NCBI RefSeq assembly: GCF_002113885.1
Contig: NW_018404202.1
Span: forward strand, 456,631 to 520,630
Direction: 5' to 3'
From: Mizuhopecten yessoensis
Lineage: Eukaryota
Length of the DNA stretch: 64,000 nucleotides
In this document: positions 1 to 59,630 of the stretch, in pieces
How positions within the stretch are numbered: position 1 is the stretch's first letter
How the letters are laid out: each line of letters opens with the position of its first letter
Notes under the pieces: model-generated
The model's input: only the letters and a program-made list of their open reading frames with translations
Databases searched by the model: none
What the model was told of the DNA's origin: nothing
Program-made: the position numbers and the translations under genes

Positions 1-459
1 ACCTAGTGATAGGACCATACAGTATCTGTTGTACAAACCTAGTGATAGGACCATACATTATCTGTTGTACAAACCTAGTGATAGAACCATACAATACCTG
101 TTGTACATACCTAGTGATAAGACCATACAGTATCTGTTGTACAAACCTAGTGATAGGACCATACAGTTTCTGTTGTACAAACCTAGTGCTAGGACCATAC
201 AGTTTCTGTTGTACACACCTAGTGATAGAACCATACAGTTTCTGTTGTACATACCTAGTGATAGGACCATACAGTATCTGTTGTACAAACCTAGTGATAG
301 GACCATACAGTTTCTGTTGTACATACCTAGTGATAGGACCATACCGTATCTGTTGTACAAACCTAGTGATGGGACCATACAGTATCTGTTGTACAAACCT
401 AGTGATAGGACCATACAGTTTCTGTTGTACACACCTAGTGATAGGACCATACAGTATCT
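1..459. repeat. 36-bp minisatellite derived from the gene C exon 3 end and its donor
   Basis: Unit ACCTAGTGATAGGACCATACAGTATCTGTTGTACAA, at least 12 copies, continues off window. Confidence 0.95.
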
Positions 460-776
460 TATGTCAAACGGGTCTTTCTCCATGAGGAAGCTGACGTCTA
501 GCGTATCACCATTGTTGACATTCACATTTCCAACAATAAAACAGCCCTGGCTGACCGTCGTGTCCCCTCTGGTCAGCACGAGGCGACTGCCACAGTTGAT
601 ATAGTTCGGCTGAAGATCAAAGTGAGGGGACAAATGGATGATGGTGGAGGCTTCGTTATCCAGAGTTACGGTAGCTGTACATGAACACGTGGCAGGTTTA
701 GTCTGTCCCTCCGCCGTGTAAGTGTCAACAATCACCCGGTTCCCCTTGGCCTCGGAGCTGGTACACATGGAGGCCA
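435..776 (-). CDS. Receptor gene C exon 3, Cys-rich ectodomain (gene continues beyond window start)
   Basis: ttttgcctag acceptor, 342 nt phase 1-1; MC..RVIVDTY..CSC..P..CGSRL..C..YC pattern aligns with ectodomain exons at 33564-33929 and 52931-53287; donor lies inside the 36-bp array, so the exact end is uncertain. Confidence 0.8.
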
Positions 777-2936: not shown

Positions 2937-5900
2937 AGTAACATGAGGTGTATTGTTGTGTTGTGTCTACTGTGTAACATGATGTGTATTGTTGTGTTGT
3001 GTCTACCGTGTAACATGAGGTGTATTGTTGTGTTGTGTCTACTGTGTAACATGAGATGTATTGTTGTGTTGTGACTACTATGTAACATGAGGTGAATTGT
3101 TGTATTGTGTCTACTGTGTCACATGAGGTGTATTGTTGTGTTGTGACTACCATGTAACATGAGGTGTATTGTTGTGTTGTGTCTACTGTGTAACATGAGG
3201 TGTATTGTTGTGTTGTGTCTACCGTGTAACATGAGGTGTATTGTTGTGTTGTGTCTACTGTGTAACATGAGATGTATTGTTGTGTTGTGACTACTATGTA
3301 ACATGAGGTGAATTGTTGTATTGTGTCTACTGTGTCACATGAGGTGTATTGTTGTGTTGTGACTACCATGTAACATGAGGTGTATTGTTGTGTTGTGTCT
3401 ACTGTGTAACATGAGGTGTATTGTTGTGTTGTGTCTACTGTGTAACATGAGGTGTATTGTTGTGTNNNNNNNNNNNNNNNNNNNNNNNNNNNNNNNNNNN
3501 NNNNNNNNTGTAACATGAGGTGTATTAATGTGTTGTGTCTACTGTGTAACATGAGGTGTATTGTTGTGTATACTGTGTAACATGAGGTGTATTGTTGTGT
3601 CTACTGTGTAACATGAGGTGCATTGTTGTGTTGTGTCTACTATGTAACATGAGGTGTATTAATGTGTTGTGTCTACTGTGTAACATGAGGTGTATTGTTG
3701 TGTCTACTGTGTAACATGAGGTGTATTGTTGTGTCTACTGTGTAACATGAGGTGCATTGTTGTGTTGTGTCTACTATGTAACATGATGTGTATTGTTGTG
3801 TTGTTCCTACTGTGTAACATGAGGTGTATTGTTGTGTTGTGTCTACTATGTAACATGACGTGTATTGTTGTGTTGTTCCTACTGTGTAACATGAGGTGTA
3901 TTGGTGTGTCTACTGTGTAACATGAGGTGAAATGTTGTGTCTACTGTGTAACATGAGATGTATTGGTGTGTTGTGTCTACTATGTAACATGAGGTGTTTT
4001 GTTGTGTTATGACTACTATGTAACATGAGGTGTATTCTTGTGTTGTGTCTACTGTGTAACATGAGATGTATTGTTGTGTTGTGTCTACTTTGTATCATGA
4101 GGTGTATTGTTGTGTTGTGACTACTATGTAACATGAGGTGTATTGTTGTGTTGTGTCTACTGTGTATCATGAGGTGTATTGTTGTGTTGTGACTACTATG
4201 TAACATGAGGTGTTTTGTTGTGTTGTGACTACTATGTAACATGAGGTGTATTGTTGTGTTGTGTATACTGTGTAACATGAGGTGTATTGTTGTGTTGTGA
4301 CTACTATGTAACATGAGGTGTTTTGTTGTGTTATGACTACTATGTAACATGAGGTGTATTGTTGTGTGGTGTATACTGTGTAACATGAGGTGTATTGTTG
4401 TGTTGTTACTACTGTGTAACATGAGGTGTATTGTTGTGTTGTGTCTACTGTGTAGAATGAGGTGTATTGTTGTGTCTACTGTGTAACATGATGTGTATTG
4501 TTGTGTTGTGTCTACTGTGTAACATGAGGTGTATTGTTCTGTCTGCTGTGTAACATGAGGTGTATTGTTGTGTTGTGTCTACTGTGTAATATGAAATGTA
4601 TTGTTGTGTGTACTGTGTCACATGAGGTGTATTGTTGTGTTGTGTCTACTGTGTAACATGAGGTTTATTGTTGTGTTGTGTCTACTGTGTAACATGAGAT
4701 GTATTGTTGTGTTGTGTCTACTGTGTAACATGAGATGTATTGTTCTGTCTACTGTGTAACATGAGGTGTATTGTTGTCTAGTGTCTACTGTGTAACATGA
4801 AATGTATTGTTGTGTGTACTGTGTAACATGAGGTGTATTGTTGTGTTGTGTGTACTGTGTAACATGAGGTGTATTGTTGTGTTTACTGTGTACCATGAGG
4901 TGTATTGTTGCGTTGTGTCTACTGTGTACCATGAGGTGTCTTGTTGTGTTGTGTCTACTGGGTAACATGAGGTGTACTGTTGTGTTGTGTCTACTGTGTA
5001 CCATGAGGTATATTGTTGTGTTGTGTCTACTGTGTAATCTACTGTGTAACATGAGATGTATTGTTCTGTCTACTGCGTAACATGAGGTGTATTGTTGTGT
5101 TGTGTCTACTGTGTAACATGAAATGTATTGTTGTGTGTACTGTGTAACATGAGGTGTATTGTTGTGTTGTGTCTACTGTGAAACATGAGGTGTATTGTTG
5201 TGTTGTGTCTACTGTGTAACATGAGGTGTATTGTTGTGTCTATTGTGTAACATGAGGTGTATTGTTGTGTTGTGTCTAATGTGTAACATGAGGTGTATTG
5301 TTGTGTTGTGTCTACTGTGTAACATGAGGTGTATTGTTGTGTCTACCGTGTAACATGAGGTGTATTGTTGTGTCCACTGTGTAACATGAGGTGTATTGTT
5401 GTCTCTTCTCTGTAACATGAGGTGTATTGTTGTGTCTCCTCTGTAACATGAGATGTATTGTTGTGTTGTGTCTACTCTGTAACATGAGATGTATTGTTGT
5501 GTTGTGTCTACTCTGTAACATGAGATGTATTGTTGTGTCTACTGTGTAACATGAGGTGAATTGTTGTGTTGTGTCTACTGTGTAACATGAGGTGTATTGT
5601 TGTGTCTACCGTGTAACATGAGGTGTATTGTTGTGTCCACTGTGTAACATGAGGTGTATTGTTGTGTCTACTGTGTAACATGAGATGTATTGTTGTGTTG
5701 TGTCTACTGTGTAACATGACATGAATTGTTGTGTTGTGTCTACTGTGTAACATGAGGTGTACTGTTGTGTTGTGTCTACTGTGTAACATGAGGTGTATTG
5801 TTTTGTCTTCTGTGTAACATGAGATGTATTGTTGTGTTGTGTCTACTTTGTAACATGAGGTGTATTGTTGTGTTGTGTCTACTGTGTAACATGAGATGTA

Positions 5901-6440
5901 TTGTTATGTTTTGTCTACTGTGTAACATGAGATGTATTGTTGTGTTGTGTCTACTGTGTAACATGAGGTGTATTGTTGTGTCTTCTCTGTAACATGAGGT
6001 GTATTGTTGTGTCTACCGTGTAACATGAGGTGTATTGTTGTGTCCACTGTGTAACATGAGGTGTATTGTTGTGTCTACCGTGTAACATGAGGTGTATTGT
6101 TGTGTCCACTGTGTAACATGAGGTGTATTGTTGTGTCTTCTCTGTAACATGAGGTGTATTGTTGTGTCTACTGTGTACCATGAGGTGTATTGTTGTGTCT
6201 ACTGTGTACCATGAGGTGTATTGTTGGGTTGTGTCTACTGTGTAACATGAGGTGTATTGTTGTGTCTTCTCTGTAACATGAGGTGTATTGTTGTGTCTAC
6301 TGTGTACCATGAGGTGTATTGTTGTGTCTACTGTGTACCATGAGGTGTATTGTTGGGTTGTGTCTACTGTGTAACATGAGGTGTACTGTTGTGTTGTGTC
6401 TACTGTGTAACATGAGATGTATTGTTGTGTGTACTGTGTA
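2937..6440. repeat. 36/31-bp minisatellite (~100 copies; N gap 3466-3508)
   Basis: Unit CTACTGTGTAACATGAGGTGTATTGTTGTG(TTGTG)T. Confidence 0.95.
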
Positions 6441-6879: not shown

Positions 6880-7460
6880 GTCACATATTTCTGTCACTGG
6901 TACTGGTCAGACATTTCTGTGAGAGGTACTGGTTAGATATTTCTGTGAGTGATATTGGTCAGATGGTCAGATATTTCTGCGAGAGGTCCTAGTCAGATGG
7001 TTAAATCTTTCTGTTAGTGGTATAGTTCAGATGGTCAGGTATTTCTGTCAGAGGTATTTGTCAGATGGTCAGATATTTCTGTGGGTGGTATTGACCAGAT
7101 ATTTCTATGAGTCGTACTGGTTGGGTGGTCTTATATTTCTGTGATTAGTATAGGTCAGATGGTAAGATATTTCAGTGAGTGGTATTGGTCAGATTGTCAG
7201 ATATTTCTGGGAGTGGTATAGGTCAGACAGTCAGATTTATCTATGACAGGTATTGGTCAGATGGTCAGATATTTCTGTAAGTTTTAGTCGTCAGATGGTC
7301 AGATATTTCTGTGAGAGGTACTGGTCAGACGGTCAGATATTTTTATGAGGGGTATAGGTCAGAAGGTCATATATTTCTGAAAGTGTTAGTCGTCAGATGG
7401 TCAGATATTTCTGTGAGAGGTACTGGTCAAATGGTCAGATAGTTCTGTGAGAGGTATAGT
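6880..7460. repeat. Degenerate ~35-bp minisatellite
   Basis: GGTCAGATGGTCAGATATTTCTGTGAGAGGTACT variants. Confidence 0.85.
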
Positions 7461-7508
7461 TGTTTGCCCATGATAGAAAAATGTTAAAGTGACAATAACG
7501 ATCCATGC

Positions 7509-8948
7509 ACATGTCTCACTGGAGTGACAGGTACCACTCACAAACATGTCTCACTGGAGTGACAGGTACCACTAACACACATGTCTCACTGGAGTGACAG
7601 GTACCCCTCACACATATGTCTCACTGGAGTGACAGGTACCCCTCACACTCATGTCTCACTGGAGTGACTGGTACCACTCACACACATGTCTCACTGGAGT
7701 GACTGGTACCCCTCACACACATGTCTCACTTGAGTGACAGGTACCACTCACAAACATGTCTCACTGGAGTGACAGGTACCACTCACACACATGTCTCACT
7801 GAAGTGACAGGTACCACTCACACCCATGTCTCACTGGAGTGACAGGTACCACTCACACACATGTCTCACTGCAGTGGCAGGGACCCCTCACGCACATGTC
7901 TCACTGGAGTGACAGGTACCCCTCACGCACATGTCTCACTGGAGTGACAGGTACCCATCACACACATGTCTCACTGGAGTGACAGGTACCCATCACACAC
8001 ATGTCTCACTGGAGTGACAGCTACCACTCACACACATGTCTCACTGAAGTGACAGGTACCACTCACACACATGTCTCACTGGAATGACAGGTACCACTCA
8101 CACACATGTCTCACTGGAATGACAGGTACCACTCACACACATGTCTCACTGGAATGACAGGTACCACTCACACACATGTCTCACTGGAATGACAGGTACC
8201 ACTCACACACATGTCTCACTGGAATGACAGGTACCACTCACACACATGTCTCACTGGAGGGACAGGGAGCACTCACACACATGTCTCACTGGAGTGACAG
8301 GTACCCATCACACACATGTCTCACTGGAGTGACAGGTACCACTCACACACATGTCTCACTGGAATGACAGGTACCACTCACACACATGTCTCACTGGAAT
8401 GACAGGTACCACTCACACACATGTCTCACTGGAATGACAGGTACCACTCACACACATGTCTCACTGGAGGGACAGGGAGCACTCACACACATGTCTCACT
8501 GGAGTGACAGGTACCACTCACACACATGTCTCACTGAAGTGACAGGTACCACTCACACAGATGTCTTACTGGAGTGACTGGTACCCCTCACACGCATGTC
8601 TCACTGAAGTGACAGGTACCCCTCACACCCATGTCTCACTGGAGTGACTGGTACCCCTCACACACATGTCTTACTCGAGTGACTGGTACCCCTCACACAC
8701 ATGTCTCACTTGAGTGACAGGTACCACTCACAAACATGTCTCACTGGAGTGACAGGTACCACTCACACCCATGTCTCACTGGAGTGACAGCTACCACTCA
8801 CACACATGTCTCACTGAAGTGACAGGTACCACTCACACACATGTCTTACTGGAGTGACTGGTACCCCTCACACACATGTCTCACTGAAGTGACAGGTACC
8901 CCTCACACACATGTCTCACTGGAGTGACTGGTACCCCTCACACACATC
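7509..8948. repeat. 35-bp minisatellite with internal hairpin (~41 copies)
   Basis: Unit CATGTCTCACTGGAGTGACAGGTACCACTCACACA; TCACT/AGTGA stem. Confidence 0.95.
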
Positions 8949-27316: not shown

Positions 27317-27884
27317 TCAAACACTGGTATCTACTTCGGCGTATACGACGTTATCAGTGTCTACTTTAGGTTTAGGACTGACAGGAGGTGGGCGTGACTT
27401 CGAACGTGACTGTGGGCGTGACGCCGAACGTGACTGTGGGCGTGACGTTCTGTCCTGGACACTCACTTCCGCGTACACTAACCCGTCCGGGTTTTGATAC
27501 CGCGAGGGTCGATTGTCATCTATCTCACCCGTCTTATTTTGATTCTTTGATTTGTTAACGACAGCATAAACATCCCCCTGTGGAGATTCCTCTAGATCTA
27601 ATTTCTCCGTACCAGTAGCAGCCATAGTAGAACGTGTCTCTGGTTTTTGTACCTGCGCGTACATGTCCCCGGTCCCCGTAACGATGTAGTTGGTGTCCGG
27701 ATATCGTGGTCCGGCCGATACGTAGAGCGAGTTGTGAGTTATAGTGTCCCCGTCATTATTCACGTACCTTTTGTTGGTAGAGGTGTTAGCGTACGGATGG
27801 ATGTCATCAGAAAGGCCTCCATTTGTATTACCGTAGGACAGGTCTCCATTGTCTGAAGTCTGCTTATCGTCTGGTTTTCTTTTC
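27317..27884 (-). CDS. Receptor gene A cytoplasmic exon with ITIM-consensus motifs (LVYAEV, VVYAEV), ends DTSV*
   Basis: aaatag acceptor in phase 2, RKRK stop-transfer, open frame to TGA at 27317; paralogous to 49778-50378. Confidence 0.88.
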
Positions 27885-28578: not shown

Positions 28579-28657
28579 CGAATGATGACGACGATGACGA
28601 CGATGATAATGATCAGTAACAACCCTCCACCGCCCGCTGCTCCAGCAATTACCCCAA
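28579..28657 (-). CDS. Receptor gene A transmembrane exon (VGVIAGAAGGGGLLLIIIIVVIVVIIR)
   Basis: ttccag acceptor, CG|GTAGGT donor, 79 nt phase 1-2; hydrophobic helix homologous to 50645-50726. Confidence 0.85.
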
Positions 28658-29885: not shown

Positions 29886-32110
29886 AGAAAGTTTGAAAAA
29901 GCCTTCGATTCTGTTTCTTGGAACTTTATAGCAAAAACCCTAAAATATTTCAAATTTGGCCCAACTATAATTAATTGGATAAAACTGTTTCAACAAAAAA
30001 TTCACTCAGCAGCAAACATAGGGGGAAACTTATCACATTTTTTCAGCAAAGAACGTGGCTGTCGTCAAGGAGATCCTGTATCTTCTTATATTTTTATTTT
30101 ATGTGCAGAAATTTTATCGATACTTTTAAGAAATAACAATAACATTAAGGGGATATTTGTACGGGATAATGAAATTCTGTTATCACAATTTGCAGATGAT
30201 ACATNAAAAAACTTATAAAACTAAAATCTCTTATATCATCATGGAATAGACGAGTACTTACACCAATAGGTAAAATATCAGTTATTAAAACACTACTTAT
30301 ATCACAGTTTAACCATTTATTTATAGCACTACCAAATCCTGATGAAACATATATAAGAAAAATTAATAGTGTACTGTATGAATTTTTGTGGAATGGTAAA
30401 CCAGATAAAATAAAGAGAGATGTGATAATTAAAAGTTATGAAGAAGGTGGTCTGAAAATGATACATTTAAAATCTTTTATAACAGCTCTTAAAGCAACAT
30501 GGATAAGACGGGTATATAAAGAAGAAGGAAATTGGGCTCTTATTTTAGAAACTTATTTTGATAAAGAAACATTAGCTAACTGTGGGCTTGAAAAATTGAA
30601 AGAAGAATCTAAACGTTGTAGTAACCTCTTTTGGAAAGATGTCTTAGAAGCATGGTACAATACTATTATCTCTAGCAATATATACAATACAAATATACGT
30701 GAAAACCCTCTGTGGTTCAATAGTGAAATTAAAATTGACAGAAAATTTACATTCAAAAATTCATGGTTTAAAAAGGGAGTACAATTTGTATATAACGTTA
30801 TTAAACAGGATGGATCACTCTACCACTTTGAAGAATTTCAAGAAAAATATAACAGAAATACTAATTTTTTGACATACCAAGGCCTAAAGAATGCTGTGCA
30901 TCATTTCATAAGAAAAAATCATCACATTTTTACTTCAGAAAAAACGGTTATCTTTCCAAATATACCTATCAATCTTAAGTTAATACTTAAAAAAAGAAAG
31001 GAGCACAAGACATATATTTAATGTTAATTAAAAATAATGTTGAACCTACTGCTCAAAGAAAATGGATATTAAATGATAATATAGATGATGAAACATGGAA
31101 AAAATATATGAATGTCCTTTTAAAACCACCACCAACTCCAAACTACAGTGGCTACAGTACAGAATAAACCACAGAATTCTCACTACAAACACATTTTCAT
31201 TCAAAATCGGCAAATCACACAATAACCTTTGCACTTTCTGTAAAATTCACCCTGAAACAATAGTTCATATGCTATGGGATTGCGAAAAAATTGATAGGCT
31301 AATTGACGAGCTGAAAACAAATATTATAACTAAAAACCTTACACTAAGATTTGAAAAACAAGAATTCCTTTTTGGTAAACATACATATAACCATACAAAG
31401 TTTTATATAGAAAACATCATAATACTACTTATAAAACAATACATATATAAAACTAAATGCCTAGAAATTGACCTTAATCTGACTAGTCTCAAAAACCATA
31501 TAAAATTTGAATTAAAAGCACAAAAGATCCTTGTGTATAAACAGAATAAATTAATAAATAAGAATGAGTTAAACCATCAAATAGATAACTGGATGCAATT
31601 ATAATATGACTATATATATATATATATGACATATTTGTTCTATACATATATACATCTATTGTACTTTATCGTCTCCTCACTGTAATAATAATCATCAAAT
31701 ATTTCATACATTTTAATTCGCCAGGCTTAAGTTAAAATATAATGACCTAGGAGTGCTCTCCATCCCCTGTAATGTTTTGTGGTTGTTGTTTTTTTGTTTT
31801 TTTTTTTCTGTTTCAGTTTATTTGGTTTTTCTCTTGTGTGTTTGATGTCATAGGTTTATATATCTTGTTTTTGCATCAGTGTCTCAGTGTTTGTCTTTAT
31901 GTATGTACATGACATTGGCAATTTTTTGCTTAATATCTGCTTATGTGTTAATAATAATATCTTATATGATGACGATGATGATGTCTGATGATGATGATGA
32001 TCTTTGTTTAATATGTATGGACAATCATGTACTTAGGAACAATGTCATATATGTTTTGTCTTGTCTTGAAAAAAAAATGAAAAAATAATAAAAATAAATA
32101 AAATTAAAAA
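29886..32110 (+). mobile_element. 5'-truncated L1/Tx1-clade LINE in the gene A intron between stalk and TM exons
   Basis: RT motifs FEKAFDSVSW, GCRQGDPVS, SQFADDT; C-terminal LQWLQYRINHRIL..CTFC..ETIVHMLWDC zinc knuckle; A-rich tail; flanking AAGAGTAG(A/C)TAGT at 29873-29885 and 32111-32123; N gap at 30205 and a frameshift near 31020. Confidence 0.92.
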
Positions 32111-32832
32111 AAGAGTAGCTAGTGCTGATTAAGTTTTAATAACTTTTTGTTGAGTAAAGCTACCGTGCGTTTAACCTATACAATTTAACTTTAGTAGCAC
32201 GTGAAATGGGACTCTGTGATAAGTATTCAACGATATTTTCAATGACAAATCTCGTTCAGTTGTTAACTAACGCTAAGAGTACGAAATTTTACAGACAATG
32301 TATATTGAGGCTCATATTGAACAGCTATGAATTTTGAAAGAATCCTTTCTTACGGTTTCGTCAAATAGATTTCTCACATGCTAAACGGCATGGTTAGACT
32401 GATTTGCATAATGTGTATATTCCCATGTTATTTTATGATATAGATATTCTTGATTGCTTTGTTATGCAGTAGATATCCCCATGTCGTATTTTGCTTATTA
32501 ATCTCCTGTCATGTTATATCATATGTTGTGAAATTTAAACCTATATTGAAGGCGTCGTAAATTTGTGACGGCAAGTCAGCGTCCGTGAAGACAATTTGTC
32601 AATGGTCTAATACGACTAATACATATATATATGGTTTTCACAAACATTTGCATCACTCTGTAACGTGATAAAATGGTCTTGTTCAAAATTATATTTATAT
32701 ATTGAAAAAATGCAAAATAAAGTACAGTTCCCATTGGGCGGCCTGTGGTAATAGTTTGTAGAAAACCGATTTAACAACCATAAATAATTTTAAGCAGCAT
32801 GTGATATGAACGACCAATGGTAGTGTACTTAC

Positions 32833-33132
32833 CGTCACTCCCTGTCTGTTCCCCTGTCGTCGCTGTATCACCTCCTGTGGAACTGACCGATGGTGGATGC
32901 GTAGGGGTCGGAGTGGATGTTGTCTGGCTAACGTGTGTCGATGTTAAAGGTTTTGTCGTTGTTGTTGTCGTCGGTGTCGTTGTTGTTGTCGTCGGTGTCG
33001 TTGTTGTTGTCGTCGGTGTCGTTGTTGTTGTCGTCGTCGACGATGTCGATGTTGTTGAAGTTTTAGTTGAGGATCTGTTGGATTTACCCTGTTGTTCGTT
33101 ACAGGTAACGATGATGTCTAAATTTGTACTTC
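32833..33132 (-). CDS. Receptor gene A exon 4, last ectodomain Cys + Thr-rich mucin stalk
   Basis: ttctgtag acceptor, G|GTAAGT donor, 300 nt phase 1-1; IIVTC followed by repeated PTTTTTT. Confidence 0.85.
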
Positions 33133-33563
33133 CTACAGAATGCATAGAGACAATCTGAATATAATAGTGCTTAATATGTCTTGTTACTGACAAATATATA
33201 CGGTCGCCGTAGGGAATGAACAATAATTATGGGAGGATATACTTTTTTCTATTTTTGGGAAATGTTAAATAATCTAAAGCTCAACTTTTAAAACACGGTA
33301 GTTTCAAGAAAACATCATGTCTGAAGCGCTATAATTTATCACACATTAAAAGAAGGTAAATATATTTTAATTTGATATGGTCACACAGATTAAATGTTTG
33401 CAAACGATTACGTGTATTGGTATATCAACCAAGCTTTTTCTCAGCAACCGACATAATGAATGAATTCGCGATAGATAATTATTTATTAGAATTGATTTAT
33501 TAAAATTAGTTAAATAAGCCTTACATCTTAACGATTTAAACAAATAACAAAAGATGCGTATAC

Positions 33564-33929
33564 CTTGTAAAGAAACTAATATACAGTGCCCTGATATCCA
33601 CGATGTACTGACGTCAGCCCGTGATAGCGTCAGTGTCAACATGTCTGATGTGCTGAAATTGTTTGTCAAAGTGGCAGGGATTGGGTTGCAATCAGTTTTA
33701 GTAAAACTACTTGATTTAGTAGAATTGATCACAAGTATACTCCCACAGTTCTGTAATGGTGCTACACGCGGGTATTCCTCCACTACGACTGATGTTGTTG
33801 TAGATGATGCTGATTCTGTACCCAGGGTAACGGTACAGGTACAGCTGTATACATCCAGGCCTCCAGTACCCCAAGTGTCTATCACCACACGTGTGTTTTT
33901 CAGTGTTCCACTTTTACACATCGTTTTAA
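33564..33929 (-). CDS. Receptor gene A exon 3, Cys-rich ectodomain
   Basis: ctacag acceptor, G|GTATAC donor, 366 nt phase 1-1 within ORF 33367..33972; MCKSG..RVVIDTW..CTC..AP..CGSIL..C..WISGHCIL. Confidence 0.85.
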
Positions 33930-34385
33930 CTGTAGTTACAAATAATACGCATGTTAATCTACTCAATGCCAAATTGATAGCGAGGAATGAGTATTTTAGA
34001 GAATATATCGCCCACGATGCTTTCTAATGTAAATGACAACGAATTACACAAAAAAATGGCGATTGGAGGATTTGGAAGGATAATGTAATCCATTTTCACA
34101 CCTTTTCTGAGCTAAATCTGAAAGCATTTTGTTTTTAAAATCAACGCACTATAAAAAGAAAATTATGGAAAGATTTCAAAAACGCAAAAAAACTTGAGAA
34201 GATAATTTTAACTTTATAATCCTAAATAATTACTCAAAATGCAACATCACGGTCAATGTCAGTTGCTCTTATACAGAATGTCATATTATCTAAATCATAT
34301 TTACTTACTTAGCATCAGTTGAGGTGTTGCCCAACAAATGAACAAATACGTTATATACTTAAAATTTGATATAGTGATACATTAC

Positions 34386-34439
34386 CATGGAAAAAGTTGT
34401 CCAGTTCAGTTCGGTCAGTACATGCCGTCGTATTGATAC
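34386..34439 (-). CDS. Receptor gene A exon 2 (Cys micro-exon GINTTACTDRTELDNFFH)
   Basis: ttatag acceptor, G|GTAATG donor, 54 nt phase 1-1; same length as and clearly homologous to gene B exon 2 (GINSTICTDK). Confidence 0.8.
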
Positions 34440-35493
34440 CTATAATAGATAGTACAGTTGTACACAGATAAACCATAACAAAACACAGATGTTTATGATG
34501 ACGCATTTTAATGTTTTTTACTCAGGTGCTAAATTTAGAATTATAAGTTTATGACTCAACTTAGTTGTTTTTGTGCTCTGTACAAATTAAAAGAAACTAT
34601 CCAAGGTACTCTATATGCAACACAATAAAGATAGGATACTTTCGCAATAACAAATGCATATACATGTACATATGACAGCTACATAATCTAATGTTATCTA
34701 AATAAGTCGAAATAATTACAGAAATACAATATAGGAAGACAATACATTAGACTTGGCAAAACGTGTATATGTATTTCATGAAGTTCAACCATATTAAAGC
34801 TGAAATAATTTTTAAAACACGAAGACAATAACGCGTTGTTTATGTACATAAACTTATGAATTACATTATATACGTAAAATTAGAGCATAACCATCGACCA
34901 CTGCTGTAAGTCATACTGAAACGTTAAGGTAACAGTAGCATGATTTGGTTGAGTAGATGGATTACCAAACGTATATGTGATCTTACGATCCTATCAGCCA
35001 TGAATATTGCCTTGTTCCTGTGCTATGATACCAATGACAGAAATATATACAGGATTAACAATTATTGTTGTTGTGCTGACGTTACTTTCGTTTTAAAGCT
35101 TCCTTCACCAGATTATCTCATTGACCTTTTGGTTAAATGGCTTTGTTTAGGTAGTGTGGACTATTCAGCATACGTTGACAATAACCGGAAATAAATTGGG
35201 ACAAATATAAATACAAAATACGTTTAAAGCTAAAGCTAAACTGCGTACACAACTAACAACTAATGAGGTAAGGCGATATTACAGATATGTTGTGTTGAAC
35301 CAGAGTGTACACACCGTAGAGTTACTAAGACAGTTTTGTATGCGGCGAAAACAGTTCAATTGTCTTTATTTTCTTAATACTTGATATAATTCAACATGCT
35401 GCTGTTAATGTATAAGTTAACACTGCCAAACAATAATTAAATTTGTATAACTTTGTATAAAGTTTCTAGCGTTTGCTTCCGCTTAAGTCTTAC

Positions 35494-35569
35494 CTTCAAA
35501 GTACATGTGTATGATCAGCAACATGTATGTAAGTCCCAGTAGGCTGAAGCTGTCTCGTCTGCCTCTCAT
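35494..35569 (-). CDS. Receptor gene A exon 1 (signal peptide MRGRRDSFSLLGLTYMLLIIHMYFE)
   Basis: ATG, basic n-region then hydrophobic core, 76 nt, phase-1 donor G|GTAAGA. Confidence 0.75.
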
Positions 35570-38500
35570 GGTGTAACTAGATGTTCAATCACAGAAAACT
35601 GTAATGTCACGTTAGGTCCAGACACCAATTCGATTTCATTTTCTGACTTTATCGGGCTGTGTTATAGCTGTGTGAAAGGAGGAAGTTAAATAACTAAATA
35701 TAGCAGTGTGAGGTAGAACCGGTTAAACGTCTCTGGACGGACGACATGCTGTATAAACTCAGTGGAGCAGTGAAACGTCAACACACTGGTGTGACCTCTT
35801 GTTTTGTTAGTGTGCACAGCTGATTGTATTCGTATTAAATTATGGTGTTCGTGGGAAATGATCGCAATTATAGAGAGTGAAAGACGTACTTCAGAAACTT
35901 TGATAATTGAATAAAACACGGAAAGAGATCCTCCATTTCGTGGTTAGTGTTATTAAACCTACATACTATTGGGGGGTTACATCGACAACCGTCATTATAT
36001 CTTTGGGTAGACAATGGCTAGCTGAAATATCTAACATCAGGTTTTTCTGCACGTTTTGTCTTGTTGAAATGATGACGTAAGAGTTGATAAAAGTTTAACT
36101 TTGAAATTTAATAAGAGATAACAGAGTCTAGAACCTAAGTGATTTACAAAACATCATATCACAGTTAATTACCTGTACGTACAATAAAGGTACCTAAGCT
36201 TTGAGTGACAGGTGTCACTAATTGTAAGATCAAATACCACAAGGTAAAGGCTATTACACTAATCCTGTTGCGTAATGTGATGGACAATAGGAATTAGTTA
36301 CATTTGTATGAAAGTAAGTTTACAGAGAGTACGTGCTGAGGGATATAAAAACTTAACACATGAGTCTTATCTCAAATGTCACAAAGGATATATAGTAATT
36401 ACAATTAAGGATAATGCTACACGTATATAGCCAAATTCTTGAGTTGTTAGATATGAACAATTCGAAATATAAATTTAATAATAGATGGTAAGATTAAAGT
36501 TTTTTATTTTTACACAATTAATTTCGGTACTAATTTATCACAAAATTTCTGTGTGATATATCAATCAGACGCCATCCTTCATTCTTGTATAAAGTGACAA
36601 ACAACCTATAAATAGAAACAGGACAGACTATAATACATTTGCTGGAAGTTTTGATTCAATTAAAATTGTGCAATTTGTATTACCTTAACACGAAAAAGAT
36701 ATATCGGAAATAAAAATTCAGATGCCATAACGTTGCGGAACTATTTGTCCCCGACATTCACCTGGTCTGCCACGTCAGGTAAAACCCCGTTTACACTTGC
36801 CAGTCTACGAGTTTTATCAACAATACATAACATTAGACGCGGGTAATTTGTTGTACACAATTTAAATAGAATTAAAACTTACAATGATTACCGTGCTTAC
36901 TTGTCAATGATCTACCACCATTAGCTGAACAATCTCTGTCAATCACTTGTTACACGATAATTACACAAAGGAGAAGAGATGTGTACCCGAGTGTGGGCCA
37001 CCCTGCTAGGCTGTATGTATTTGTTCATTCAATTCTGGCTGTACTACCTAAATGGTGTTTACTATCGTGTTTATAGCGTCATAAAATATGATTCCTTTCA
37101 ATCCATGAAGGATATTATGAAATAGGTGAGACCTAGTCAGCGGGCACATATGAAAATACAGTTTTCTGCATAATTTAACTGTTTCATTTTATGTACAGTC
37201 GGTAGAATAGTTAGAGTCCAATCCTTGCATAATTCAATGGTGGTACCATTCTATATACTAGTATATATATATATTGGGAGGGAGGGGGGGGGGGGTAGCT
37301 AAGGATTCCTCATCCCTCCCCAAACCTCTGCCAGCCTAAAGGATTTTCTTTCAAAATATTGGGCAGACAGGGGCTAGTTTGGCCCATTTTTTTTTTTTTA
37401 TTAAAGTAGGTATGGACAGCATTTGTTAAGATGTATGTGTATTAGAGAAATGCCATGCCCTTCATAAAACTTAAACAAAATGGCAAACATGTCCGCGTTT
37501 GAAAAGTTATTTAACTCTTTACTGTGGGAAGAGTGTATGGCCGAATGGTAAGTTTGGGGAGGATGTCAGGTAAGTTCCGCCCACATTGAAATTAGCATAA
37601 TTATGACGTCATAAAGCATGCAACGTCATATTTTCCGGCCAATTTCACGGCTCCCCGTGAATGGCATTGGCCGAACCATCTGTATATCATAGCAATACGA
37701 AACCTCAATGCTAGGGTTTTATGAATACCATCACGTGAAGCTGTCAGTTTGTTACACGTATGACATCATTAAGTAGCATTTCGATTTACAGAAAGTTTGC
37801 AAAACTAGAAAGAAGTGAGGTCATGATTTTTGTTTCTACCCTCCCAAAAAAATAAGTTTCTCGCTTTTAGTAATCTAAAATTATAGTTTTCCCGCCATTT
37901 GTTTTCGTGTGAATGTCCTGTCCAGTGAACTGCACTGCACTGCTAAGATCCTCAAAGTTGTTAATACTTGTTCAAGACCAAAAATATCAGGGCCCGTATC
38001 CATAAAACCGTTCTCTGTGCTCAAACCAAATTTCTTGAAACTCACTTATATTATGAAAGCAATCAAAAGTCAAATGTTAACATTAACCACTTATTGTATT
38101 GTATCTGTTATTACTCTATTACATTTTTCAAGGGACAATCATTTTTTTATTTAAATATTCTGATTTATAAAATATTCTGTTTAAAAGTTATGACGTTACA
38201 TGCTGGGCAGTCCTAACAATTGTAGTAAAGGCAGTTATCAGAGGATTACAAAACCCATATAGCTTAATTATCTCTTTTTTACTTATATGAACTGGACAAC
38301 AAAAGGAATGGCTTTTGAATAATTTAAGAATTGATGCTTAAATTTAACAGTGATTTACTGTATGTAAATATGCAATTAGGATAATTATTACATTACGCAG
38401 TACATATTGAAGAGATTCTGCCTTTTCTCCAGTTTTAAAAGACAAAGAACATTCAAAGACACAAAAGTACAGAGGAATTGTTAAGTCTTGAAGAACAGTC

Positions 38501-52420: not shown

Positions 52421-52606
52421 CCTTTACGTAGTTGTATCCGCCATTTACATCACCACCATTGTCTGTAATGTTTGTAACGGTCTGCACTGAACTGGAGCTA
52501 GGGGTCGTTATCGTCGTCGTTGCAGGGGTCGTTTTCGTTGTAGGGGTCGAAGCAGAAGAAGCCCCCAATTCGCCCGCGTCATCACACGTAACCGTTATAT
52601 TTACAC
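52421..52606 (-). CDS. Receptor gene B exon 4, last ectodomain Cys + Ser/Thr stalk (3' end uncertain)
   Basis: ttccag acceptor phase 1; VNITVTCDDAG..STPTTKTTPATTTITTPSSSS; donor either non-canonical G|ATAAGT (exon end 52421) or weak GT donors (exon end 52457 or 52454). Confidence 0.7.
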
Positions 52607-52930: not shown

Positions 52931-53287
52931 CTGTTCTAATAAGTATACAGTACCCAGATTGCCACTGTATGTTGTTATTGACTTTGGATAAAGTTATATT
53001 TAACAGTTCACTGCTGGCAAAATCACTGATGATATCACCAGTAATCCGTGTGCATTGATATTCAGTATAAGTATTAGTCGGATGTCTGTTAAATCTAAGG
53101 ATGCTTCCACAATCAGACGCCGGTGCTGTTCGAGAATAAGGTCCAGTTTGTAAGTTGACAGGACCTGTGTTAGTCCCACTAAGACTAACTGTACATCGAC
53201 AACTGTCGTAGTCTAACACTCCTGTGTCGTACGTATCTACCACCACACGTCCAGATGTCAGTGATCCATTCCTACACATCGGCAACA
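52931..53287 (-). CDS. Receptor gene B exon 3, Cys-rich ectodomain
   Basis: ttacag acceptor, G|GTGAGT donor, 357 nt phase 1-1; MCRNG..RVVVDTY..CRC..AP..CGSIL..C..WQSGYCIL. Confidence 0.87.
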
Positions 53288-55314: not shown

Positions 55315-55368
55315 CGTTAGTGAAACCGTCCGAATTAGCTTTATCAGTGCATATAGTTGAGTTGATGC
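55315..55368 (-). CDS. Receptor gene B exon 2 (Cys micro-exon GINSTICTDKANSDGFTN)
   Basis: tttctttcag acceptor, G|GTATGA donor, 54 nt phase 1-1; homologous to gene A exon 2. Confidence 0.8.
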
Positions 55369-58856: not shown

Positions 58857-59630
58857 GTAAGTAACGAGGATATGTAAACACAACTTGTATCACGTCATAT
58901 TGTGGTAACCTTACTGGTGGTGCTACTGGCGACCGGGGCCTACGTGATTCTGTACAGACGATAAGTAACGAGGATTTGTAAACACAACTTGTATTACGTC
59001 ATATTGTGGTAACCTTACTGGTGGTGCTACTGGCGACCGGGGCCTACGTGGTTTTGTACAGACGGTAAGTAACGAGGATATGTAAACACAACTTGTATCA
59101 CGTCATATTGTGGTAACCTTACTGGGGGTGCTACTGACTACCGGGGCCAACCTGATTCTGTACAGACGGTAAGTAACGAGGTTATGTATACACAACTTGT
59201 GCCACGTCATAGTGTGGTAACCTTACAGGGGGTGCTACTGGCGACCGGGGCCAACGTGATTCTGTACAGACGGTTAGTAACGAGGATATGTTAACACAAC
59301 TTGTATCACGTCATATTGTGGTACCCTTACTGGTGGTGCTACTGGCGACCGGGGCCAACGTGATTCTGTACAGACGATAAGTAACGAGGATTTGTAAACA
59401 CAACTTGTATCACGTCATATTGTGGTAACCTTACTGGTGGTGCTACTGACTACCGGGGCCAACCTGATTCTGTACAGACGGTAAGTAACGAGGTTATGTA
59501 TACACAACTTGTGCCACGTCATAGTGTGGTAACCTTACAGGGGGTGCTACTGGCGACCGGGGCCAACGTGATTCTGTACAGACGGTTAGTAACGAGGATA
59601 TGTATACACAACTTGTGTCACGTCATATTG
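58794..59630 (+). repeat. 104-bp x8 tandem amplification of the gene D TM exon 3' part and donor
   Basis: Units start at 58794, 58898, 59002, 59106, 59210, 59314, 59418, 59522. Confidence 0.95.

Follow-up and report, generated by a model that had tools for sequence, protein, structure and literature searches.

A predicted divergent CUB-type domain, assembled from three exons, forms the head of a putative scallop and oyster receptor family

Introduction

CUB domains (PF00431), ten-stranded jelly-roll β-sandwiches of about 110 residues, are extracellular recognition modules, often carried on a phase 1-1 exon, that occur in spermadhesins, MASP/C1s CUB2, neuropilin a1/a2, Kremen and PCPE-1. Here we describe a candidate relative in a 64,000-nucleotide stretch of the genome of the Yesso scallop, Mizuhopecten yessoensis (contig NW_018404202.1, positions 456,631 to 520,630; hereafter the window), where a gene that we call A encodes an extracellular domain, or head, assembled from three exons. 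Like CUB domains, this head is predicted to form a jelly-roll of the same size and strand order, places four cysteines at the canonical positions and spacing in a weak alignment, uses a phase 1-1 exon, and probably serves as an extracellular recognition module. Unlike them, it has no match to a hidden Markov model (HMM), carries eight cysteines rather than four, adds an N-terminal helix and a C-terminal strand that both come from neighbouring exons, and bears signatures of its own (RVV(I/V)DT, CxC and CGS), while calcium-site residues are not evident in that weak alignment.

Two further systems invite comparison. CDCP1 (CD318/Trask) is, like the predicted product of gene A, a single-pass protein with tyrosine motifs in its cytoplasmic tail, through which it signals, and its CUB-like domains have diverged far enough to have required Pfam models of their own. 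CDCP1 differs in having several CUB-like domains, Src-type motifs rather than ITIMs (immunoreceptor tyrosine-based inhibitory motifs), and no mucin stalk, and no significant sequence relation connects it to the scallop head. The paired immune receptors of vertebrates (KIR, LILR, PILR, Siglec) resemble the scallop genes in their tandem multigene clusters, their lineage restriction and fast evolution, and their near-identical heads on either an ITIM tail or a different short tail. Their heads, however, are of the Ig type, whereas the scallop head is CUB-like by prediction and sits on a mucin stalk, and the alternative scallop tail has neither a charged transmembrane residue nor a proven adaptor.

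We propose that gene A encodes a type I membrane glycoprotein in which a divergent CUB-type head is borne on a mucin stalk, and that this head typifies a receptor family of scallops and oysters. We give this reading a probability of roughly 75%.

Results

Three exons of gene A encode one extracellular domain

Coordinates are positions in the window; genes A, B and C all lie on the minus strand. The exons of gene A, in order of transcription, are:

35494..35569, minus strand: exon 1, with the start codon and a hydrophobic signal peptide, 25 codons plus 1 nucleotide (nt); placed by tblastn with the database paralogue P0062 (XP_021339902.1) and by reading the donor site
34386..34439, minus strand: micro-exon, 54 nt, phase 1-1, 17 whole codons, with an N-glycosylation sequon and Cys 1
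33564..33929, minus strand: main head exon, 366 nt, phase 1-1, 121 whole codons, with Cys 2-7; predicted core of the CUB-like β-sandwich
33100..33132, minus strand: first 33 nt of the stalk exon, the last β-strand of the head, ending V-T-C (Cys 8 codon 33103..33101)
32833..33099, minus strand: remainder of the stalk exon, a Thr/Ser/Pro-rich, mucin-like stalk with an 18-nt repeat
28579..28657, minus strand: transmembrane exon; transcript contigs with a loose end at 32833 resume at 28657 (matched 28628..28657), and the translation was read
27317..27884, minus strand: cytoplasmic tail exon; it holds the stop codon and several tyrosine motifs, of which two have the canonical ITIM form

The stretch 33100-34439 runs from the start of the micro-exon, through the main exon, to the end of the last strand, and these three pieces encode one folded extracellular domain of about 150 residues. 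The whole stalk exon (33132..32833, 300 nt) starts with a short alternating-hydrophobic stretch and then turns Thr-rich. Splice dinucleotides are GT..AG at all three introns that join exon 1, the micro-exon, the main exon and the stalk exon.

A first-pass annotation of the window, made from the letters alone, had described eight cysteines and the motifs MC, RVV(I/V)DT, CxC, CGSxL, SG(Y/H)C and VTC, and we found all of these both in the exons as read and in an alignment of 30 family rows (alignment A2; 16-50% identity to its first row). No row of the 30 lacks Cys 3, 4, 5 or 6, and Cys 2 and Cys 7 are each present in 29. Among rows that reach the column in question, Cys 1 is kept in 22 of 22 and Cys 8 in 27 of 27. 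Where a cysteine is absent, there is a gap in a truncated or exon-skipping gene model, and there are no substitutions. The family-wide conservation of the eight cysteines is far beyond chance.

The head is predicted to adopt a CUB-type fold

We modelled the main exon of gene A alone with AlphaFold2 from a 12-row alignment, which gave nine strands with a predicted local distance difference test (pLDDT) score of 78 and a predicted template modelling score of 0.72. The whole head was viewed through P0062, whose head is 75% identical to that of A, modelled with the 30-row alignment; together with P0004, P0005 and P0008 this database protein represents the joined, multi-exon form of the gene A type. 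In the P0062 model residues 28-180 form a block with pLDDT 85-97, in which the part from the micro-exon is a short helix (residues 31-38, pLDDT 96) and the V-T-C strand spans residues 172-177 (pLDDT 95); the stalk is disordered. The micro-exon and stalk-start pieces are thus modelled as ordered, integral parts of the domain (pLDDT about 95). The earlier statement that neighbouring exons supply the first and last cysteines is confirmed. Both models are all-β in the head, as had been supposed from its alternating hydrophobic residues.

Searches by shape led to CUB domains. With the main-exon model, Foldseek placed PCPE-1, MASP-2 and spermadhesins on top (E of about 1e-4, template modelling (TM) scores of 0.55-0.61). 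For two independently built models, every one of the first 14 places went to a CUB domain, and two further libraries, searched with the main-exon model, were also led by CUBs; CUB domains were the top structural matches in three libraries. A shape search of the ESM Atlas returned mostly CUB-family clusters (TM 0.62-0.67), and the language-model neighbours include CUB and CRF-BP clusters. The predicted jelly-roll β-sandwich superposes on solved CUBs over about 103 residues at about 3 Å, and small CUBs are aligned almost from end to end (107 of the 109 residues of 1spp). At the level of fold, then, what the first-pass annotation had offered as a guess, a divergent CUB-like domain, is supported.

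The cysteines could be compared in register by aligning the family, with hhalign, to single-exon CUB domains of the same genome in sets of 7 and 17 sequences. Against the 7 CUBs (P = 0.15), the four cysteine columns of CUB are occupied by Cys 2, 3, 5 and 6, and its Trp column by Cys 4; the alignments to the 17 (P = 0.02-0.03) start beyond Cys 2 and give Cys 3, 5 and 6 the same places. Here Cys 3 and Cys 4 are the CxC pair, Cys 5 is the Cys of CGS, the S-G that precedes Cys 7 lies on the CUB G-F, and the spacings of 27, 31 and 19 residues are CUB-like.

On this register, the two canonical CUB disulfides (C1-C2 and C3-C4 in CUB numbering) would most likely correspond to Cys 2-3 and Cys 5-6, and Cys 1, 4, 7 and 8 would be four family-specific extra cysteines that form two further bonds. 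These would pair either as 1-8 and 4-7 or as 7-8 and 1-4, the latter being considered because Cys 7 and Cys 8 face each other in the last hairpin. The domain would thus have a core, the CUB-type jelly-roll of the 366-nt exon, to which the helix from the micro-exon and the C-terminal strand from the stalk exon are clamped, each bringing one of the extra cysteines.

Searches by sequence give a different picture. The domain had been left unassigned, with a Pfam search among the checks proposed, and it stays unassigned by sequence: Pfam scans of heads A, B and C at E <= 10 returned nothing meaningful, and neither single-sequence nor profile searches of PDB sequences found a match. The related statement that the domain is neither Ig nor EGF held by sequence and by fold. 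No Ig family appeared in the Pfam scans of A, B and C or of 38 family members, and no Ig fold was among the top structural matches; EGF had no Pfam match in A, B or C, and where the EGF module has six cysteines in roughly 40 residues, the head has eight along about 150 residues that belong to one β-sandwich.

Several of these and related results weigh against a CUB assignment. The Pfam scans of heads A, B and C contained no match in the CUB clan, and the only one among the 38 family members was a single protein that grazes PF23667, the CUB model for CDCP1 (E 0.0098). A genome scan with PF00431 recovered 139 CUB exons and none from the head family; conversely, the family profile found no canonical CUB exon in the genome and no matches between E 0.002 and 1. 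The hhalign similarity was not significant (probability 0.4-2%), though the register was constant across runs, and in these weak alignments the columns of the CUB calcium-site Asp residues, part of a Tyr/Glu/Asp/Asp set with which a subset of CUBs binds calcium, oppose non-acidic or gap positions. Finally, the full-length P0062 model had no Foldseek match at E <= 0.001, presumably through dilution by the disordered stalk and tail; a domain-only model and VIA-align were used in place of that query.

Alternatively, the head could be an independent, lineage-specific eight-cysteine β-sandwich that has converged on the CUB jelly-roll in shape only. We regard this as unlikely, because CUBs fill the leading ranks for two independent models and the top of the further libraries, the alignment to small CUBs is near complete, and the cysteine columns of CUB are all four occupied, at CUB-like spacing (the 17-sequence runs cover three of them). 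The models thus support the head as a very divergent CUB-type β-sandwich, an unannotated variant of the CUB fold rather than a new fold, and we infer that it is homologous to CUB.

The head family is found in scallops and oysters

A search of the Mizuhopecten genome yielded 16 head exons with a single sequence and at least 32 with the family profile, in tandem clusters on four large contigs; the exons found share the phase 1-1 splice pattern. In a word-index search of proteins, the 121-residue exon matched only two short proteins, one of them named Mizuhopecten yessoensis, a result limited by the length window of that search. Neither Pfam nor the word search had settled what the domain is, and since our claim depends on relatives being absent, we ran an exhaustive HMM search with the 12-row alignment; of 1.84 billion cluster representatives it recovered 61 at E <= 0.001. 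Named members come solely from scallops (Mizuhopecten, Ylistrum, Argopecten, Pecten) and oysters (Saccostrea, Crassostrea), and their database labels are either 'uncharacterized' or misnomers such as 'mucin-like' that derive from stalk composition. Two candidates were dropped: P0053, a weak and spurious match to a bacterial repeat protein, and P0058, an unnamed 2,681-residue ENA protein that matched only about 47 profile positions. The bivalve literature that we searched for this family or architecture yielded no description of it.

Complete members share one plan: a signal peptide, a short Cys segment, the head, the V-T-C strand, a Thr/Ser/Pro stalk, a membrane anchor and a tail with tyrosine motifs. 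The Ylistrum proteins P0005 and P0008, which have consecutive accession numbers and lie on one contig, are likely orthologues of A and B. Three Mizuhopecten proteins (P0014, P0063 and P0064; XP_021350202-5) are NCBI isoforms with two complete head-stalk-anchor units per protein; each probably represents two tandem genes of the family, read through or merged into one model. One head exon (L009, G000:C1496:976757-977080) is pseudogenised, with in-frame stops, and an intact copy (L011) lies 11 kb away. Five more head exons lie on the contig of the window (G000:C875, at about 196, 224, 246, 270 and 294 kb), 160-260 kb upstream, so that the window is one end of a larger locus.

Tails point to probable signalling receptors

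The tails of genes A and B are related, and both are long with motifs of ITIM form. P0062 and P0004 have heads 75-88% identical to those of A and B, but their membrane anchor is another one and their tail is short, of the type found in gene D of the window (59107-59600), a head-less member with a membrane anchor and a short three-tyrosine tail. Related heads therefore stand on an ITIM tail in A and B and on another tail in P0062 and P0004, as in paired receptors, and the occurrence of D-type tails on A/B-like heads at other loci suggests that exons for heads and for tails have been shuffled. The tyrosine motifs of the tail, canonical ITIM forms included, are conserved between scallop genera. 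In an oyster, a different receptor has been reported to signal through ITIMs (PMC11841013).

A receptor family whose head serves in recognition would agree with the tandem clusters, the combinatorics of heads and tails and the confinement to certain lineages. In such a protein an O-glycosylated mucin stalk would keep the head away from the membrane, ligand binding would most likely fall to the head, in a multigene family of scallop and oyster receptors, and signals would pass through the tyrosine motifs of the tail, which in A and B include ITIMs. Selection on the head counts against our interpretation: pairwise ratios of nonsynonymous to synonymous substitution rates between paralogous heads were 0.26-0.79, which indicates relaxed constraint, and there was no domain-wide diversifying (positive) selection across the head.

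The protein could instead be a passive surface mucin or adhesion molecule whose head is a structural cap or a homophilic adhesion knob, without signalling. Its stalk is indeed mucin-like, sources name relatives accordingly, and gene D shows that a family member can go without a head in this very window. Yet tyrosine motifs conserved between genera, canonical ITIMs among them, and the same heads on two types of tail both fit signalling receptors better than passive mucins, and we hold a passive role to be very improbable.

Gene A transcripts include the micro-exon

The main exon of gene A was present in 20 sequencing runs from 11 studies, and we read its splicing from contigs of four runs, from four studies, placed on window positions 32700-35700. 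Three identical contig joints occurred in all four runs (33131/33563, 33929/34386 and 34436/35491; GT..AG, minus strand), and one contig of 849 nt spans exon 1, the micro-exon and the main exon and continues into the stalk exon. The first-pass annotation had named absence of the micro-exon from transcripts as the sign that its assembly of the domain was wrong; mature transcripts in all four studies include it. That the exons are an artefact of gene prediction or the remains of a dead gene is a negligible prospect: some family copies are broken, as L009 is, and gene C is located within satellite DNA, but in four independent studies the splicing of gene A agrees exactly with the exons given here, which refutes such a reading for gene A, its frame is open through exon 1, micro-exon, main and stalk exons, and Ylistrum balloti holds orthologues.

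No joint that skips the micro-exon of gene A was listed in the four runs, in assembled contigs, which lose rare forms. In Pecten maximus, by comparison, isoforms X1 and X2 of LOC117327138 (P0090 vs P0060) are listed by NCBI as differing by exactly the 17-residue micro-exon segment that holds Cys 1. The skipping isoform remains in frame, and its head is left with seven cysteines. The micro-exon may be a cassette exon in some family members; the supply of Cys 1 would be a reason for keeping it, to be read beside this skipping isoform.

Genes B and C and other features of the window

Two further heads lie in the window:

55315..55368, minus strand: gene B micro-exon, 54 nt, phase 1-1, with Cys 1 in the same place as in A
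52931..53287, minus strand: gene B main head exon, 357 nt, phase 1-1, 39% identical to A (tblastn match 53279..52938)
52560..52606, minus strand: start of the gene B stalk exon, the last strand with V-T-C
436..776 (3' end approximate), minus strand: gene C main head exon, about 30% identical to A (tblastn match 771..496, 32%)

In the window, gene C yielded neither a stalk nor a micro-exon, the latter sought with a motif scan and with relatives as tblastn queries; upstream of the exon the DNA is satellite. The exon of gene C lies amid at least five satellite arrays with periods of 30-42 nt (1-459, 992-2213, 2249-2923, 2938-6430 and 6930-8000). The first of these, a 36-nt array, starts within the last codons of the exon, and its reading frame repeats the exon end many times. 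In gene A, the intron between the stalk and transmembrane exons contains two long open frames on the plus strand (30386-31604) that resemble retrotransposon remnants.

Discussion

The evidence from splicing, from cysteine conservation across 30 rows and from predicted structures favours a divergent CUB-type head on gene A. A bolder proposal is that the head is the recognition module of bivalve-specific paired receptors, with ITIM tails set against a second type of tail, for microbial or self/non-self recognition. Such receptors would be a convergent counterpart of KIR, LILR and Siglec on a CUB scaffold, in which inclusion of the micro-exon would decide, like a switch, whether the disulfide set is complete or broken. 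We put this forward as a tentative and rather doubtful extension of the CUB-type receptor reading.

The three-exon anatomy fixes the boundary of a construct, from the micro-exon through V-T-C, for structure work, for ligand screens and for a new family model. It may also provide an example of how an exon of 54 nt can be indispensable to a fold. Bivalves are not known to have antibodies and depend on large, poorly described families of surface receptors. The head described here defines one probable family of this kind, with at least 32 exons in the scallop genome and with members in oysters too.
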